Positions 42,620 to 47,689 of a stretch of 64,000 bases of DNA are shown here, piece after piece; the first letter of the stretch is position 1; each line of letters starts with the position of its first letter. Both the position numbers and the translations under genes were made by a program. Source of the stretch: Guillardia theta CCMP2712 (lineage: Eukaryota; Protista; Cryptophyta); contig NW_005434571.1 of the NCBI RefSeq assembly GCF_000315625.1, positions 14,027-78,026 on the forward strand, given 5' to 3'. Below the pieces are notes generated by a model. That model did not search any database. It saw only the letters and a list, made by a program, of their open reading frames with translations, and was not told the DNA's origin.

Positions 42620-42865
42620 AGGCTCGCCGATCTTCTGTGGGCAGGCCGGGGCCTACTACAGCGACCCGCCCGTGGCTCTGGGCACCGAAGTTGAATGATG
42701 ATTGCTCAAGTTTTTTCTTTGAGCTCGGACTCGCAGCCTGAGTGTGAGGAAAGTTACTGCGGCGCTGAGACTTGAGACTTGGCCGGGCAGTGGAAGACCG
42801 TGACTGTGTGGTTCTTCAAGATCCTGACTCGCCGGACGGTTTTTAACAACTTGGCAAGTTAGAGA
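42620..42865. repeat. Short/degenerate GC-rich island 8
   Basis: ggccggggcc, gactcgc, aacttggcaagtt words. Confidence 0.5.
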
Positions 42866-42938
42866 TGAAACGCGAGGAACGGATCGAAACTATGTTCTAC
42901 CTTCAACACTTCCGAAGGCCCAGGACCTGAAAACACCT

Positions 42939-45900
42939 TCACTCCGCTCGCGTGTTTCGATACGCCACGTATCGCTGGTGCCCATTGCTGTGCATGGCCC
43001 AGCTCTTGTAGTCCTTGAGCGACAGCTGCAGCTCGCACACGTGAAAGTTGACCCCCAGCCGATGAGTCTCCTCGTTGTCAAGACGGACGTTGAGACACAC
43101 GTCTCGGTATGCTCCTGACTGCTGCGACGTGAAGTCCGGATCGAACCGATTCTTAACTCGCAGGATGACGAGCTCCTGGTCCTCGCAGATCCCTTTTAAG
43201 CATCTCACGATCTCTTCCAGGCTCTCGAACACCATTGATTGCCGCACCACGTCGAGCAGCCTCCACACTTTCCCCTTGTATGACCTGTGCAGCTTCTCAA
43301 TCGACCGATCGAAGCCCTTGAGCCTTGCCCAGCCGTGTAGAGCCGCCGTCTCCTGCCCCTCATACCTCACCCACCTGATCTCACTCTCATCCCCCGCCTT
43401 CTCCTGCACAAGCCCTCCCCACCGCTTCAGCAGCTCCTTCACCTTGCGCAGGAAGGGAAGCTCGAGCAGCATCGCCTGATTGTAGAGCTGATCGAGACAA
43501 GTTATCCTCGCCGCGTCATATCCCATGGGTCGTTGCAAAGATGAGATACCATGCCCGGGCTCCCCCCTTTGCAACTGGCATATGGCACCCTTGCTCCAAG
43601 CCTCAGATCCGGAAGCGACAATCTGCTTCAACTTCTTCACTTGCCCCATGGTCCCTTGGTCTGCCGTCAGCGCTCGCCACACCTCGTTATAATACTTCAC
43701 GTCGTCTTCTATCCCCAGCCATGCTCGATGGATTGCTCGTCTTCGCATCAACTGCACAGCCATCCAGCTCACCAACAACACCAATCCGGTTATAGGAAAC
43801 TGAAAGTTCCCTCCCCCCAAAGTAATGAAGTAAAATGAAATAGAAGCAACCACGGTTATGCAAGCGTTGAAGAGAACTGTCGGCAAAAATTTCTCCTCCC
43901 AAAATACCAAAGACAGTCCTGTGGTCGAAGATCCCCAGCCTAGCAAGAAGAACAACAAGGCGACCCCCGCAGAATCTCCATGCACAGCACTGCTGATCGC
44001 GGCAGCGATCCCTAGAACACCAGTCCCCCAGAAGGCGAAGGAGAAGCACACAACTCCCATGCGAGGCCTCCCAAGAATGCTCACGATGGGGCCAGAGAAG
44101 CACCCGAGGACCACGGGGAAGAGGAAGAAGACGGTGCCAGCAGCCATGTACAGAGGGGTGACAAGGCTGATGACGTTTTCAGCTCCTCGTTGCAGGTCAG
44201 TGGGATAAGTCTCATCCCAACGGGGGATGCAGGCGGCATTGTAACGGTCCCAATCACATTTGGTACCGGACTTGAGGGTCCAGCTTGTGTTTGCCAGCTG
44301 CCAGGGGCTCCCCGATGCGGAGGTGACATCCAGCCGGAAACGGACAGGGTCTCGTCCCTCGGTTCCGGAGCGACTGTCCGTGATGAAGTAGAATGCGTTG
44401 GCTGATTCGAGACTCGGGAAAGAAAAGTAGAAGATATCCCCGTCCTCCACTCCTTGGACCGCTGAGGAGGTCTTACACCCGTTCAACATCCATCCCAGCT
44501 GAAGAGAATAGTTCCCTCCTGCTGAAACTGAGTCCTGCCTTCGTTGCAGAACTATCATCCTTGCCGATCTGACTTGAAACACTTGCTTGCGCATGTACGT
44601 TTGCCATAATCCTCCTTCCCCGAAACCGCGGACTGCATAGAAGATACCCCATATAATCAGCAGCGCCTTGAACCAGGTCTTCTGCATCGCTAGCGTGCAA
44701 GGGATGGAAGTGAAGAGCACGCTGGATGCTGATGACTTCTTCACTGCATGCTGCAGCTCCTGGAGTCTTTTTCCAAGGGTATCCCCAGCAAACAGGCATC
44801 TCTGTCTCAACAAGTCCTTGTGTCTCTCTTCGTCCGTCAAGGTGTGAGCAGCAGATCGGAAGAGTGAGTTCAGGGACCCGGCCTCCCTTCCCGTCTCCGC
44901 AAGCGTTTCAACCAGGACCCTCGAGAGTTTATGGATCTTGTGATGCTTCAGTCTCCGGATCCAAGCGGAACAATCAAGCCTCGACCAAAACAACAAGCAT
45001 CTGATGGATATGTTCACCTGATGCATTCTCCGGTACCCCTTCAAGTCTTTCAACATGCTCGTGGTGGCGGCAGATTGCAGACAAGTCAGGACTAGACGGA
45101 TTTCACACACAAATGCACAAATGCCGTAGAACCTTGTTTGCTCTGTGATCAACCGTGCCTTGAGACACACATCCCTGACGTGTCCCAAGTTTTTGACCTT
45201 GTCCCTCCCAGCGAGTCTGTTCTTCAGGCTCACAATGACCACTTCTCTGTCTTCCATCAGAGTCTGCAGACAATCTGCGATGTCTTGTATCCTATCGAAC
45301 ATGATACTCTGCCGCACTAGATCCGTATGTCTTGCAACATCTCCATGGTATTTGCGAAGAATCTTTTCGCAGCTAGCTTCAAAGCTCTTCATAGGGGTCT
45401 CTTCAAAACGAGCTGTAGACCCGTGAGCGGTCTGCAGTCTTTCAACGAGGACCAACAACTTGTCGACTAACAGTTTCTGCATCGTCACTCCCTGAGCGTT
45501 CAGTTGGTCAAAGTTCGTGATTTCCTTGGTTTCAGCAAGCGATACACTTGCAAAGGAGGTGAAGGCCTCGGATGCTGCAAACTTGGAGGGAGTGCGAAAT
45601 CTTCTCGACGAAGCAAATGTTTCGAGGGCTCGAATCCTATCCATGTCTGTCCTTGAATCCTCCTCGGTTACTGGATTGTATGCCATACGAAATTGCCGCA
45701 ACTTCGCCGTCTTGCGTGCTTTTCTGTGACAAGCCTGTGCAACTTCCTCCAGCAGCATCAAGCTTGATTCCTCTCCCTCGGATAGAAAGTCCTCCCAGAC
45801 CTTGTCGAGCTTGGCCTGGTGCATCATGGCAGACTTGCGGGAGGAAGCCCTGTGAGATTCACGGACTGCTATTAGGAAAAGAAAGAAGAACAACTCCACA

Positions 45901-47070
45901 GCTCTGATGTATGCCCCGTCTGATTTCAATGCAGCTTCGACCACGAGGAGGAGTAATGATGATGCCGCCCCGAGCTCCAACACCAAGCACTCGTGGAAGA
46001 CGAGGGGACAAGGAAACAGGAACAGTATCTGCAGCAAACAAAGTCAGGTGAGCAGGAGGAGCGCGGCTGAGCAGTACCGTGAGGCTCTCGATCAGCACAA
46101 CGTAGTCTGCCTTCAAGTTGCAGCTGCTCACCCTCACGATGAACTGAGAGATGCCAACGACGGCAGCAAGGAAGTATCCCAAGCACACGCTCTGCGCACA
46201 ATCTCATCACTCGTACATCATTGCTATCTTTGGTAACGCTCTTGCCTGCACTGACGACTTACACTTGCCCCAACTTGCGCATACAACAGCAAGCAAGAGC
46301 CCGAGCCCTTTCAACAATCGCTCAACGATGCTCGCGAAGGCAGGCCACCGGCATGTGATAGCGTTCCAATCGATCTGATACAGTTGTTTTGGCTGCCACG
46401 GAGGAAAACCCCTCGAGAAATCTTCCATGGGCACGTCTTCACCCACTGAGACAGTCGCGACGCGAGCTAAGGACAGCATGGACGGCATCACGTACACTCT
46501 CCAGTGCTCGCCATCACTAGACGACTCAAGCGTGAATTCAACGGGGAGGAGGCCACTACTTATGTTAGGGGTGATCAAGTAGAAGCCGTTGAAAGAGAGT
46601 AGCGAATCTGATCTCAGGGTCAAGGACGCTTTTGCCCCCCGTTGTACATAAAAGTGCTCCTGGTCGTTTGAGACTCCTGGCATCGGAATCATGCAATTGC
46701 CTTTCAGTACCCCAAAGGATTGTATCCCAGGAGAAGTTATTGCAGGCCCTGCCAGTCCATTCTGAAGCTTTCTTGCTGTGAAGCGAAAGTAGCGAGCGGG
46801 CCCTTCCGCTTCTTGGATGCTCCCAAACGACCATAGCGCAGATTCAAAGGGAGGTGCGAAGAATAGCAGGAAAGCAACCAGGACCAGAGCCACTCGGAAT
46901 ATCCTCGCGGAAAGAAACCAAGTGAAGGGGTGAGGTGAGCACAGAACTTCGAACAGTTTCTGCGAGGCGATCTTTGTCCACGCGGCTTCAAGAGAATCCT
47001 GCAGTCGGTGACCCTTCCCCTGGCTGCTGGCAACAAGATAGTCGAGCCATACCTGAGGAAACTCGGCCAT
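42939..47070 (-). CDS. ~1342-aa internally duplicated multi-pass membrane protein with two RelA/SpoT-like nucleotidyltransferase domains; exons 47070-46246, 46191-46078, 46028-42939
   Basis: C-terminal domain RLKGFDRSIEK-LLDVVR-RVKNRF-GAYRDV-CELQL-GHQRY; internal degenerate copy PMKSFEASCEK-HTDLVR-SLKNRL-GHVRDV-CEIRL; each preceded by a TM, a soluble loop domain and several TMs; introns of 54 nt (GC-AG) and 49 nt preserve frame. Confidence 0.85.
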
Positions 47071-47689
47071 GGAGAGTGGTTCAGAGGAGATGCATTTACA
47101 GGTGTTGCCTCCCTCCCTTCACAAGGCCACCACCACCATCGTCGCTGCTATAGCATTGGGACAGCTTCACGCAATCAGGTGGTTAGGTTCCCGCGTCTAG
47201 CTAGTGCAAGGTAAGAGATTATCTAATGGACTTCATATGTTATCTTGTCATAGTATAGAGCTTATATTGATGAATGAAAACATTTTTTTCAGGAAGGAAA
47301 ATTATTGTAATCCAAACGGTTACGGATGATTGTTTTGTAACGACTGAGGCGATCTTTGAATTCTGTGTTGAAATTTCAAAATAAATGATTGATATTCGAG
47401 ATTTCCAGGTCTTATGTAACTTTATTTTATATTTTACTCTTGACCTCGACCGCATCGGTTCAAATAAAATGTTTTTTACTGATGACCGAGCCGACCTTTT
47501 GCGGCGGGAAATCATCAGCAGCTAGGGTTCAGGGTTCAACATTTCATAATAAACACCTTAGTATTTCGAGTCGATCGTATTACCCGCCCTCCCTTCCGGT
47601 CTGATCGTAGTAACAGTTTTATAGATTGTAGGGGTTTTAGCGGAAGTTAAAAAAAATAATAATAATAACCATCACTGCGGCGACCATGA

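Follow-up and report, generated by a model that had tools for sequence, protein, structure and literature searches.

A tandemly duplicated membrane protein of Guillardia theta with RelA/SpoT-type synthetase domains: a candidate receptor-coupled alarmone synthetase from a large cryptophyte family

In the cryptophyte alga Guillardia theta CCMP2712, a stretch of 64,000 nucleotides (hereafter the window; C103:14027-78026 of the 87-Mb assembly, contig NW_005434571.1) carries at positions 42939-47070 of its minus strand one expressed three-exon nuclear gene, the product of which is a membrane protein of 1342 amino acids made of two homologous units. Each unit consists of an N-terminal helix, a first transmembrane segment (TM1), a beta-sandwich ectodomain of ~140 amino acids, five more TM segments, a juxtamembrane helix, and a C-terminal domain of ~190 amino acids. 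Profile searches and comparisons of AlphaFold2 (AF2) models make the assignment of the C-terminal domain to the synthetase fold of the RelA/SpoT superfamily secure. We judge it rather probable that the protein is a two-unit polytopic enzyme of receptor type with cytosolic domains resembling small alarmone synthetases (SAS), in which the second of these domains (D2) is a pyrophosphokinase regulated through the first (D1), the ectodomains, and the TM segments. The term used in the initial annotation, a receptor-coupled alarmone synthetase, is partly supported.

The fold of the C-terminal domain was approached through both sequence profiles and predicted structure. A profile built from an alignment of 104 family domains (A1) was searched against 177,635 PDB sequences and gave two matches only, to Tas1 (E 4.9e-5) and to RelP/YwaC (E 1.8e-3), the latter spanning the whole catalytic domain (profile positions 65-186). 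The AF2 model of D2 had a predicted local distance difference test score (pLDDT) of 92, and when it was compared with the PDB using Foldseek, all of the best 50 matches were Rel, SAS, CapRel, Tas1, or FaRel2 structures, the best E being 7.9e-6. VIA-align superposed the D2 model on RelQ with a Z of 14.1 and a root mean square deviation of 2.7 Å over 146 residues, covering residues 4-183 of 190. Z scores for RelP, Tas1, CapRel, and FaRel2 were 13.4, 12.0, 11.9, and 7.0, respectively; long RelA/SpoT homologue (RSH) enzymes scored mostly ~9-10, and other nucleotidyltransferase (NTase) folds reached at most 7.3. As modeled, the D2 fold is closest to the single-domain SAS enzymes. The initial annotation had proposed a Rel/Spo-like domain from short motifs and had named a structural comparison as a check; the A1 matches to Tas1 and RelP, together with the Foldseek and VIA-align results, bear the proposal out.

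Curated models recover little of this relationship. Among relatives, PF04607 (RelA_SpoT) stays below its gathering score of 27 bits even in the best-scoring, P0005 (25.4 bits) and P0007 (21.9 bits), and it is found at E <=0.01 in 14/104 family domains. Scans of the 104 domains against NCBIfam and PADLOC yielded nothing useful, with six weak PADLOC matches to one candidate model. Pfam and NCBIfam scans of the window protein detected no HD hydrolase, TGS, or ACT domain, in line with the earlier reading that a hydrolase domain is lacking, and Pfam found no class III cyclase domain (PF00211).

Counterparts of the RSH motifs in D2 were assigned via hidden Markov model (HMM) alignments of A1 to RelP and Tas1. 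By this mapping, K1217 and K1225 correspond to the ATP-binding lysines, D1239 with R1242 to the catalytic aspartate, Y1287-R1288 to the Tyr-Arg pair of the G-loop, E1312 and Q1314 to ExQ, and H1330 and Y1333 to H..Y. The full series reads R1215-x-K1217, R1221, K1225, Y1230, D1239, R1242, K1272-N1273, and A-Y1287-R1288-D1289, continuing in the C-terminal part with H1309, E1312-x-Q1314, H1330..Y1333, and R1337. About 18 positions are nearly invariant across the family, and D2 retains every family-invariant residue; both lysines of the ATP motif (RxKxxxSxxxK) are invariant or nearly so. The strings picked out by eye in the second half (RLK..R..EK, D..R, GAYRD, ELQL, and H..Y) were confirmed by this residue mapping.

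D1, by comparison, has lost seven family-conserved residues, with A531 in place of Arg, H596-V597 in place of Gly-Tyr, F619 in place of His, R624 in place of Gln, and L639/L642 in place of H..Y, and it also has P525 at the position of the leading Arg of RxK. Two of these changes, the loss of the Tyr in GHVRD (H596-V597) and of the Gln in EIRL (R624), are exactly as described in the initial annotation. D1 retains K527, K535, D549, R552, K582-N583, and E622. On this evidence D1 is unlikely to be a normal enzyme; D2 probably is one.

This pairing of one intact with one degenerate half proved to be a family-wide pattern, seen in 38 tandem relatives. Across 138 single-unit and 38 D2 domains, retention at the ~18 conserved positions is roughly 90-100%. 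The catalytic Asp is present in 138/138 and the Glu in 137/138 single-unit domains, and both are present in all complete D2 domains; the G-loop Tyr, which is V597 in D1 of the window protein, is kept in 34/36 D2 and 128/138 single-unit domains. In the matching 38 D1 domains several positions are relaxed, with R69 retained in 23/38, Y135 in 17/38, Q162 in 18/38, and H178 in 23/38. Strong conservation in D2 and single-unit domains thus points to retained catalysis. A FastTree tree of D1, D2, and single-unit domains (179 rows, with duplicate or fragmentary records and domains of <150 amino acids left out, the window's own D1 among them) showed no clean separation of D1 from D2, with 8 changes, and we therefore do not claim one ancient duplication.

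The duplication extends over the whole unit. With D2 (the last 190 residues) as the query, phmmer found D1 (residues ~500-650) at E 1.5e-21. A profile of the N-terminal part, ectodomain, and TM segments of half 2, searched against a small local database, found the half-1 parts of the window protein and of nine relatives, the closest of them at E 1e-12 to 1e-15. The repeat was not seen in a plain blastp self-comparison of the window protein, which is too insensitive for it; HMM methods found it. The claim that the protein is two homologous halves is upheld by both sets of E values, and the N-terminal strings originally aligned by eye (GxRLQ..., ...LF..(I/L)(P/C)..., and TM1) fall inside the half-2 profile match.

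Hydropathy gave TM1 and five further hydrophobic segments per half, for 12 predicted TM helices overall. An AF2 model of residues 717-1097, made with 42 homologues, had a pLDDT of 91 and contained six TM helices; it begins with short N-terminal helices, followed by TM1 (model residues 48-66), the beta-sandwich (81-218), and five long helices, the last of which runs on into the conserved juxtamembrane helix. Hydropathy and model agree with the order first proposed for each half (one TM segment, a soluble loop, several TM segments, and a Rel/Spo-like domain) and support the comparison drawn there with the M1-C1-M2-C2 layout of adenylyl cyclases. Since each unit has six TM helices, the N terminus, D1, and D2 would lie on one face of the membrane and both beta-sandwiches on the opposite face. 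In both halves TM6 is followed by basic clusters; from these, together with the need of the fold for ATP, we infer that the Rel-like domains are cytosolic. The first hydrophobic segment begins only at residue 49; for this reason we read the N terminus as one without a cleavable signal or a bipartite plastid leader, in agreement with the earlier statement that a plastid-targeting signal is absent.

Within half 2, conserved residues of the ectodomain include R803, R810, C831, and D873-P874, and W896 is invariant. The TM bundle has a conserved E1024 at the TM4/TM5 turn, and in the juxtamembrane motif Y1093 is invariant and D1089 and W1097 are kept in >=90% of relatives. A discoidin/F5-8-type-C identity for the ectodomain was considered on account of a single weak Pfam match (E 0.035) in the paralogue P0004; no match to discoidin turned up, and the identity was not adopted.

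The gene model is defined by RNA. Three transcript sources were used, namely contigs X1 and X6, assembled from public runs that behave as RNA, and the JGI transcript contig L001. X1 record 1 (5184 nt) and X6 record 8, which come from different studies, are both joined as 47165..46246 / 46191..46078 / 46028..42800. The resulting reading frame runs from an ATG at 47070 to a stop codon at 42939-42941 through 1342 codons without stop or frameshift, so that the span first claimed, 42939-47070, is exactly the coding sequence. L001 aligns to 47145..46069 and 46029..42825, with intron 2 removed and intron 1 kept. The 18 raw reads of run X19 fall mainly at the 3' end and contain no splice joints; expression of the gene is evident in ordinary cultures from several studies. 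The overlapping public model, GUITHDRAFT_145446 (P0002, 997 amino acids), matches the 1030-amino-acid exon 3 translation at 99% but covers only 66% of that translation. It is wrong with respect to the RNA-supported product of 1342 amino acids, from which it leaves out ~85 residues in the TM bundle of half 1 and nearly all of D2.

Whether the locus is an annotation artefact or a pseudogene, that is, two genes or a dead gene broken by in-frame TGA TGA, was a question raised by several of these data. L001 keeps the 54-nt stretch with TGA TGA and was called as two separate open reading frames (ORFs), the minus strand of the window itself shows ORFs of 287 amino acids (47070-46207) and 1032 amino acids (46037-42939), and the NCBI model GUITHDRAFT_145446 has just 997 amino acids. 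Two independent RNA contigs, however, excise exactly 46245-46192 and 46077-46029 and join the three exons in frame, the product is collinear, residue for residue, with paralogues P0003 and P0004 over both exon junctions, and the frame is open throughout. The joined RNA contigs refute the artefact or pseudogene reading, to which we give next to no weight, and the check proposed earlier, whether exons 1 and 3 belong to separate genes, finds both on one transcript.

Some features of the transcript stand apart from this question. Intron 1 is in phase with both flanking exons, and its two TGA codons are consecutive; where it is kept, as in L001, the protein would stop after TM2, which could reflect regulated retention or mere unprocessed RNA. 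Alternative intron 1 donors, GTATGC and GTAAGT, were tried and ruled out by the RNA contigs, which show the GC-AG intron at 46245-46192. The X1 contig extends ~920 nt past the 3' end seen in L001 (42825), and the extension below 42800 could be a longer 3' untranslated region (UTR), read-through, or an overlapping neighbor transcript. Elsewhere in the window, positions 1-2000 have 25% G+C, compared with ~50% in the remainder, and include a 28-bp tandem repeat at 673-786 (4.1 copies, 98% identity); further on, at 2014-2124 and 2678-2767, there are simple repeats rich in CT. Coordinates of the gene and of the parts of its product are collected in Table 1.

Table 1. Parts of the gene and of its predicted product, in window coordinates
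Feature	Position	Strand	Basis
Transcribed span (5' UTR at least 95 nt, 3' UTR at least 114 nt)	42825..47165	-	L001 and X1
Exon 1, 275 amino acids: N-helix, TM1, ectodomain 1, TM2	46246..47070	-	joint 46246/46191 in two RNA contigs
Intron 1, 54 nt, GC-AG (CAG|GCAAGA...GCGCAG), two in-frame TGA	46192..46245	-	RNA contigs
Exon 2, 38 amino acids: TM3 and beginning of TM4	46078..46191	-	RNA contigs; translation; paralogue collinearity
Intron 2, 49 nt, GT-AG	46029..46077	-	spliced out in L001, X1, X6
Exon 3, 1029 amino acids and stop: remaining half-1 TM4-TM6 bundle, D1, entire half 2	42939..46028	-	RNA contigs; translation
Half 1 cytosolic N-helix (predicted)	46927-47070	-	translation, hydropathy
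Half 1 TM1	46852-46926	-	hydropathy
Ectodomain 1	about 46342-46827	-	translation, hydropathy; homology to half 2
Half 1 TM2	46267-46335	-	hydropathy
D1, residues ~480-652, degenerate SAS-like domain	45012..45530	-	phmmer E 1.5e-21; residue mapping
Half 2 N-terminal helices, residues 717-761, homologous to ~15-48 of half 1	44685..44819	-	profile match; AF2 helices H14-44
Half 2 TM1, residues 764-782	44622..44678	-	hydropathy; AF2 helix 48-66
Half 2 ectodomain, residues ~797-934, beta-sandwich	44166..44579	-	AF2 strands 81-218, pLDDT >90
Half 2 TM2-TM6 bundle, residues ~939-1096	43680..44153	-	AF2 helices 223-248, 252-279, 284-306, 308-332, 343-380; hydropathy
Juxtamembrane helix motif I1086..D1089..Y1093..W1097, directly after TM6	43677..43712	-	conservation
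D2, residues 1153-1342, intact SAS-like synthetase domain	42942..43511	-	profile, AF2, Foldseek, VIA-align

The gene had at first been treated as a singular oddity, and this did not hold: the cryptophyte family to which it belongs is very large. When the G. theta assembly was searched in six frames with A1, at least 111 domain matches came back, many of them paired ~2.1 kb apart inside one long ORF, and most apparent single-domain matches (600-900 amino acids) have the N-helix, TM1, ectodomain, and multi-TM module in one copy. Paralogous twin-domain genes form tandem clusters, some of them head-to-head, at C30:477353-529490, C206:46645-57045, and C1:833989-842928, which points to recent local gene amplification. 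Across 1.84 billion representative proteins, HMMER identified 1485 relatives at E <=0.001. Cryptophytes (Guillardia, Hanusia phi, Hemiselmis tepida, and Cryptomonas paramecium) make up nearly all of the named members found; beyond them there is one weak EukProt match labeled INCI, and the remainder are environmental or transcriptome sequences. The ESM Atlas gave tentative pointers to clusters from diatoms and ciliates as well. Relatives share with the window protein a median of 20% identity in the ectodomain, 16% in the TM bundle, and 43% in the Rel core, the first two diverging much faster than the third. A few of the G. theta paralogues are automatically named "RelA/SpoT domain-containing protein" in UniRef. 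Canonical long RSH genes, which have both HD_4 and RelA_SpoT domains, number only two in the assembly (C47:131263-132737 and C24:131220-132315).

The same genome also contains a second, more divergent family with some 20 loci or more, whose ORFs are 800-1080 amino acids long and have no Pfam matches. In each member, one early TM segment is followed by an ectodomain of greater length, a block of several TM segments, and a Rel-like C terminus, which aligns with the N-terminal half of the Rel-like profile at E ~1e-9 to 1e-11 genome-wide. They are found on contigs C229, C4, C71, C32, C31, C53, and others, and include the loci L002:124-3195:+ and L003:2496-4970:-.

Comparison with known enzymes places D2 among the synthetases and sets the protein apart from all of them in architecture. 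SAS enzymes are soluble homotetramers. With RelQ (SAS1) and RelP (SAS2/YwaC; PDB 5DED, 6FGK, and 6EWZ), D2 shares the single-domain RSH synthetase fold (Z 12.7-14.1 over 145-152 residues) and counterparts of the Lys pair, catalytic Asp, G-loop Tyr-Arg, ExQ, and H..Y. Identity to these enzymes is only 13-17%, however, D2 lies below the Pfam threshold, it has Arg for the Ser of RxKxxxS and no His after GYR, and it is fused to a 6-TM receptor-like module that is tandem-duplicated in a eukaryotic host and predicted to place the domain in the cytosol. Tas1, the (p)ppApp-synthetase toxin of the Pseudomonas aeruginosa type VI secretion system (PDB 6OX6), is the best sequence-level match in the PDB; in a run of 32 residues around K-x3-R-x3-K...D-x-x-R, about half are shared with the family. 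That match is limited to the N-terminal third of the domain, and Tas1 is a secreted interbacterial toxin with an immunity protein, whereas the domain described here is the C-terminal output of a membrane protein. CapRel and FaRel2, toxSAS tRNA pyrophosphokinases (PDB 7ZTB and 8PU4), have the catalytic fold in common with D2 and likewise combine a synthetase domain with a sensor module to which it is fused or by which it is governed; in the window protein the sensor consists of membrane and ectodomain parts, not of a pseudo-zinc-finger or an antitoxin, in a eukaryotic context without an operon partner. The long RSH enzymes of plastid (p)ppGpp metabolism (RSH1-4/CRSH) belong to the same superfamily and are also encoded by eukaryotic nuclear genes, but they differ from the window protein in having HD, TGS, and ACT domains and a plastid leader, in lacking its membrane architecture, and in that its synthetase domain falls below the Pfam threshold.

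Among eukaryotic genes, the nearest precedent is the set of "divRel" genes of Atkinson et al. (2011), found in Dictyostelium, Aspergillus, Gibberella, and two diatoms (PMC3153485). Like the gene described here, these are nuclear genes with an RSH synthetase domain only, unplaced in bacterial subgroups and without an obvious partner hydrolase, and their function was left open; that survey mentions no cryptophytes, TM architecture, duplication, or gene-family expansion (PMC3153485). A literature search, incomplete and with few subscription journals, found no paper on the cryptophyte members, the receptor architecture, the tandem intact/degenerate layout, or the expansion. In architecture, the closest parallel is with membrane class III adenylyl cyclases (6TM-C1-6TM-C2) and the receptor-type cyclase families of protists, which also have two 6-TM modules, each followed by a homologous nucleotide-converting domain, one conserved and one degenerate, with a conserved helix between membrane and catalytic domain; single-unit relatives of the window protein could homodimerize. 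There is no homology between the two, as the fold here is RSH/NTase and not class III, and the window protein has a large ectodomain between TM1 and TM2. In SAS enzymes, moreover, the active site is complete within each domain, so that nothing here implies catalysis at a shared interface.

The anatomy, a variable outside domain and membrane bundle joined by a conserved juxtamembrane helix to a conserved SAS-like domain, fits a receptor-type enzyme. In the mechanism that we propose, TM1 would serve as a signal anchor and the beta-sandwich ectodomain would lie on the outer or lumenal face. D2 would be an ATP-dependent pyrophosphokinase; in the cytosol it would move the beta-gamma pyrophosphate from ATP onto the 3'-OH of a purine nucleotide and so form a product of the (p)ppGpp or (p)ppApp type. 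D1 would be a non-catalytic or weakly catalytic regulatory partner, and activity would be set by the ectodomain and TM bundle via the juxtamembrane helix. The logic would be that of the 6TM-C1-6TM-C2 adenylyl cyclases, the single-unit relatives of 600-900 amino acids taking the role of homodimeric cyclases. Clues to the product diverge, as the highest structural scores are to SAS enzymes that make (p)ppGpp and the best sequence match is to Tas1, which makes (p)ppApp; modification of tRNA in the manner of CapRel is also conceivable.

Several results weigh against this proposal. Pfam and NCBIfam gave no match to the window protein (PF04607 had none at E <=1), and a single-sequence PDB search with D2 returned nothing. 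For the half-2 model of ectodomain and TM segments, Foldseek found nothing at E <=0.001 and only weak rows to C2/PLAT-like beta-sandwiches; a wide VIA-align comparison gave TMEM45A (Z 8.7) and a galactanase domain of carbohydrate-binding-module type (Z 6.1), both within the noise range of the tool. Family members do not conserve the leading Arg of RxK, carry Arg where RxKxxxS has Ser, as Tas1 does, and lack both the His of GYxSxH and the RT of ExQxRT; with canonical RSH motif residues changed in this way, substrate and chemistry could differ. No free-standing hydrolase of the Mesh1 type turned up in the six-frame search, in which PF13328 matched the two long RSH genes only, and a cytosolic degradation route is therefore not evident. 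A complex prediction for D1 with D2 scored 0.12 against a mark of 0.34, a result that is neutral on whether D1 and D2 pair.

The main competing account of function takes the protein to be an immune or defense-type receptor with a toxSAS-like effector, in which recognition of a pathogen or of non-self would shut down translation or metabolism by pyrophosphorylating tRNA 3' ends or by draining ATP/ADP into (p)ppApp, rather than through a reversible second messenger. It would explain why the best PDB match of A1 is the toxin Tas1, with which the family has the string K-x3-R-x3-K...Y-x-G-D...D-x-x-R in common, and why CapRel and Tas1 score near RelQ and RelP (Z 12.4-14.1) in structure. A very large, tandemly clustered family with a fast-diverging ectodomain resembles many families of recognition receptors, no cytosolic hydrolase was evident in the six-frame search, and RelA_SpoT domains occur as effector domains in fungal NLR-like proteins. 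The structural neighbors with the highest Z are nevertheless housekeeping SAS enzymes, FaRel2 reaching just 7.0, and neither an antitoxin-like partner nor a pseudo-zinc-finger sensor is present. Expression in ordinary cultures would be intolerable for an unrestrained toxin but tolerable for an autoinhibited one, and the acceptor could be either a nucleotide or RNA. On balance, we consider an immune role unlikely.

We think it less probable still that both Rel-like domains are catalytically silent or perform other chemistry, such as binding or sensing of nucleotides or a different nucleotidyl or phosphoryl transfer. The protein would then be a membrane protein of transporter, channel, or adhesion type, and its nucleotide-binding domain would be regulatory. 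The missing canonical residues, which are absent even from D2, and the subthreshold scores of the curated Pfam model in every member tested would suit such a protein, as would the loose likeness of the 6-TM bundle to TMEM45A and to rhodopsin-like folds (Z ~6), a likeness below the helical-bundle noise mark of the tool. What speaks against silence is the near-complete retention of the ~18 positions in single-unit and D2 domains, including the Mg2+-binding Asp and Glu and the stacking Tyr of solved SAS enzymes, whereas D1 in the same proteins shows what relaxed constraint looks like. With these alternatives set beside it, the receptor-type pyrophosphokinase remains the account that we favor. An extension of it, in which cryptophytes would possess a cytosolic, receptor-driven second-messenger system based on (p)ppGpp, on (p)ppApp, or on some new nucleotide pyrophosphorylated at the 3' position, with dozens of 6- and 12-TM receptor-synthetases that differ in ectodomain and turn external cues into an alarmone-type signal, and with pseudo-enzyme-regulated tandem forms, is offered tentatively, as an idea that may well fail.

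Alarmones of the (p)ppGpp type are seen as signals of bacteria and plastids, and their possible synthesis in the eukaryotic cytosol, with the enzyme responsible, is an old question; the divergent SAS genes of eukaryotes that a 2011 survey listed were never explained (PMC3153485). What is new here is a known catalytic fold in a receptor-like, massively expanded eukaryotic architecture, represented by an expressed family in a culturable, genome-sequenced alga. Curated Pfam thresholds miss the family entirely, PF04607 finding 2 genes in the genome as opposed to at least 111 domain matches with A1. At ~190 amino acids, D2 is a tractable enzyme candidate for which D1 provides a natural inactive comparator and D1239 and E1312 are clear targets for mutation. 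Overall, the size of the family suggests an undescribed receptor-to-nucleotide signaling system in a eukaryote. If the domain is active, it would define a new class of receptor enzyme together with a new eukaryotic second messenger, or else a new kind of eukaryotic immune effector; if our reading is true, cryptophytes would have a eukaryotic counterpart of receptor cyclase signaling, built on RelA/SpoT chemistry.

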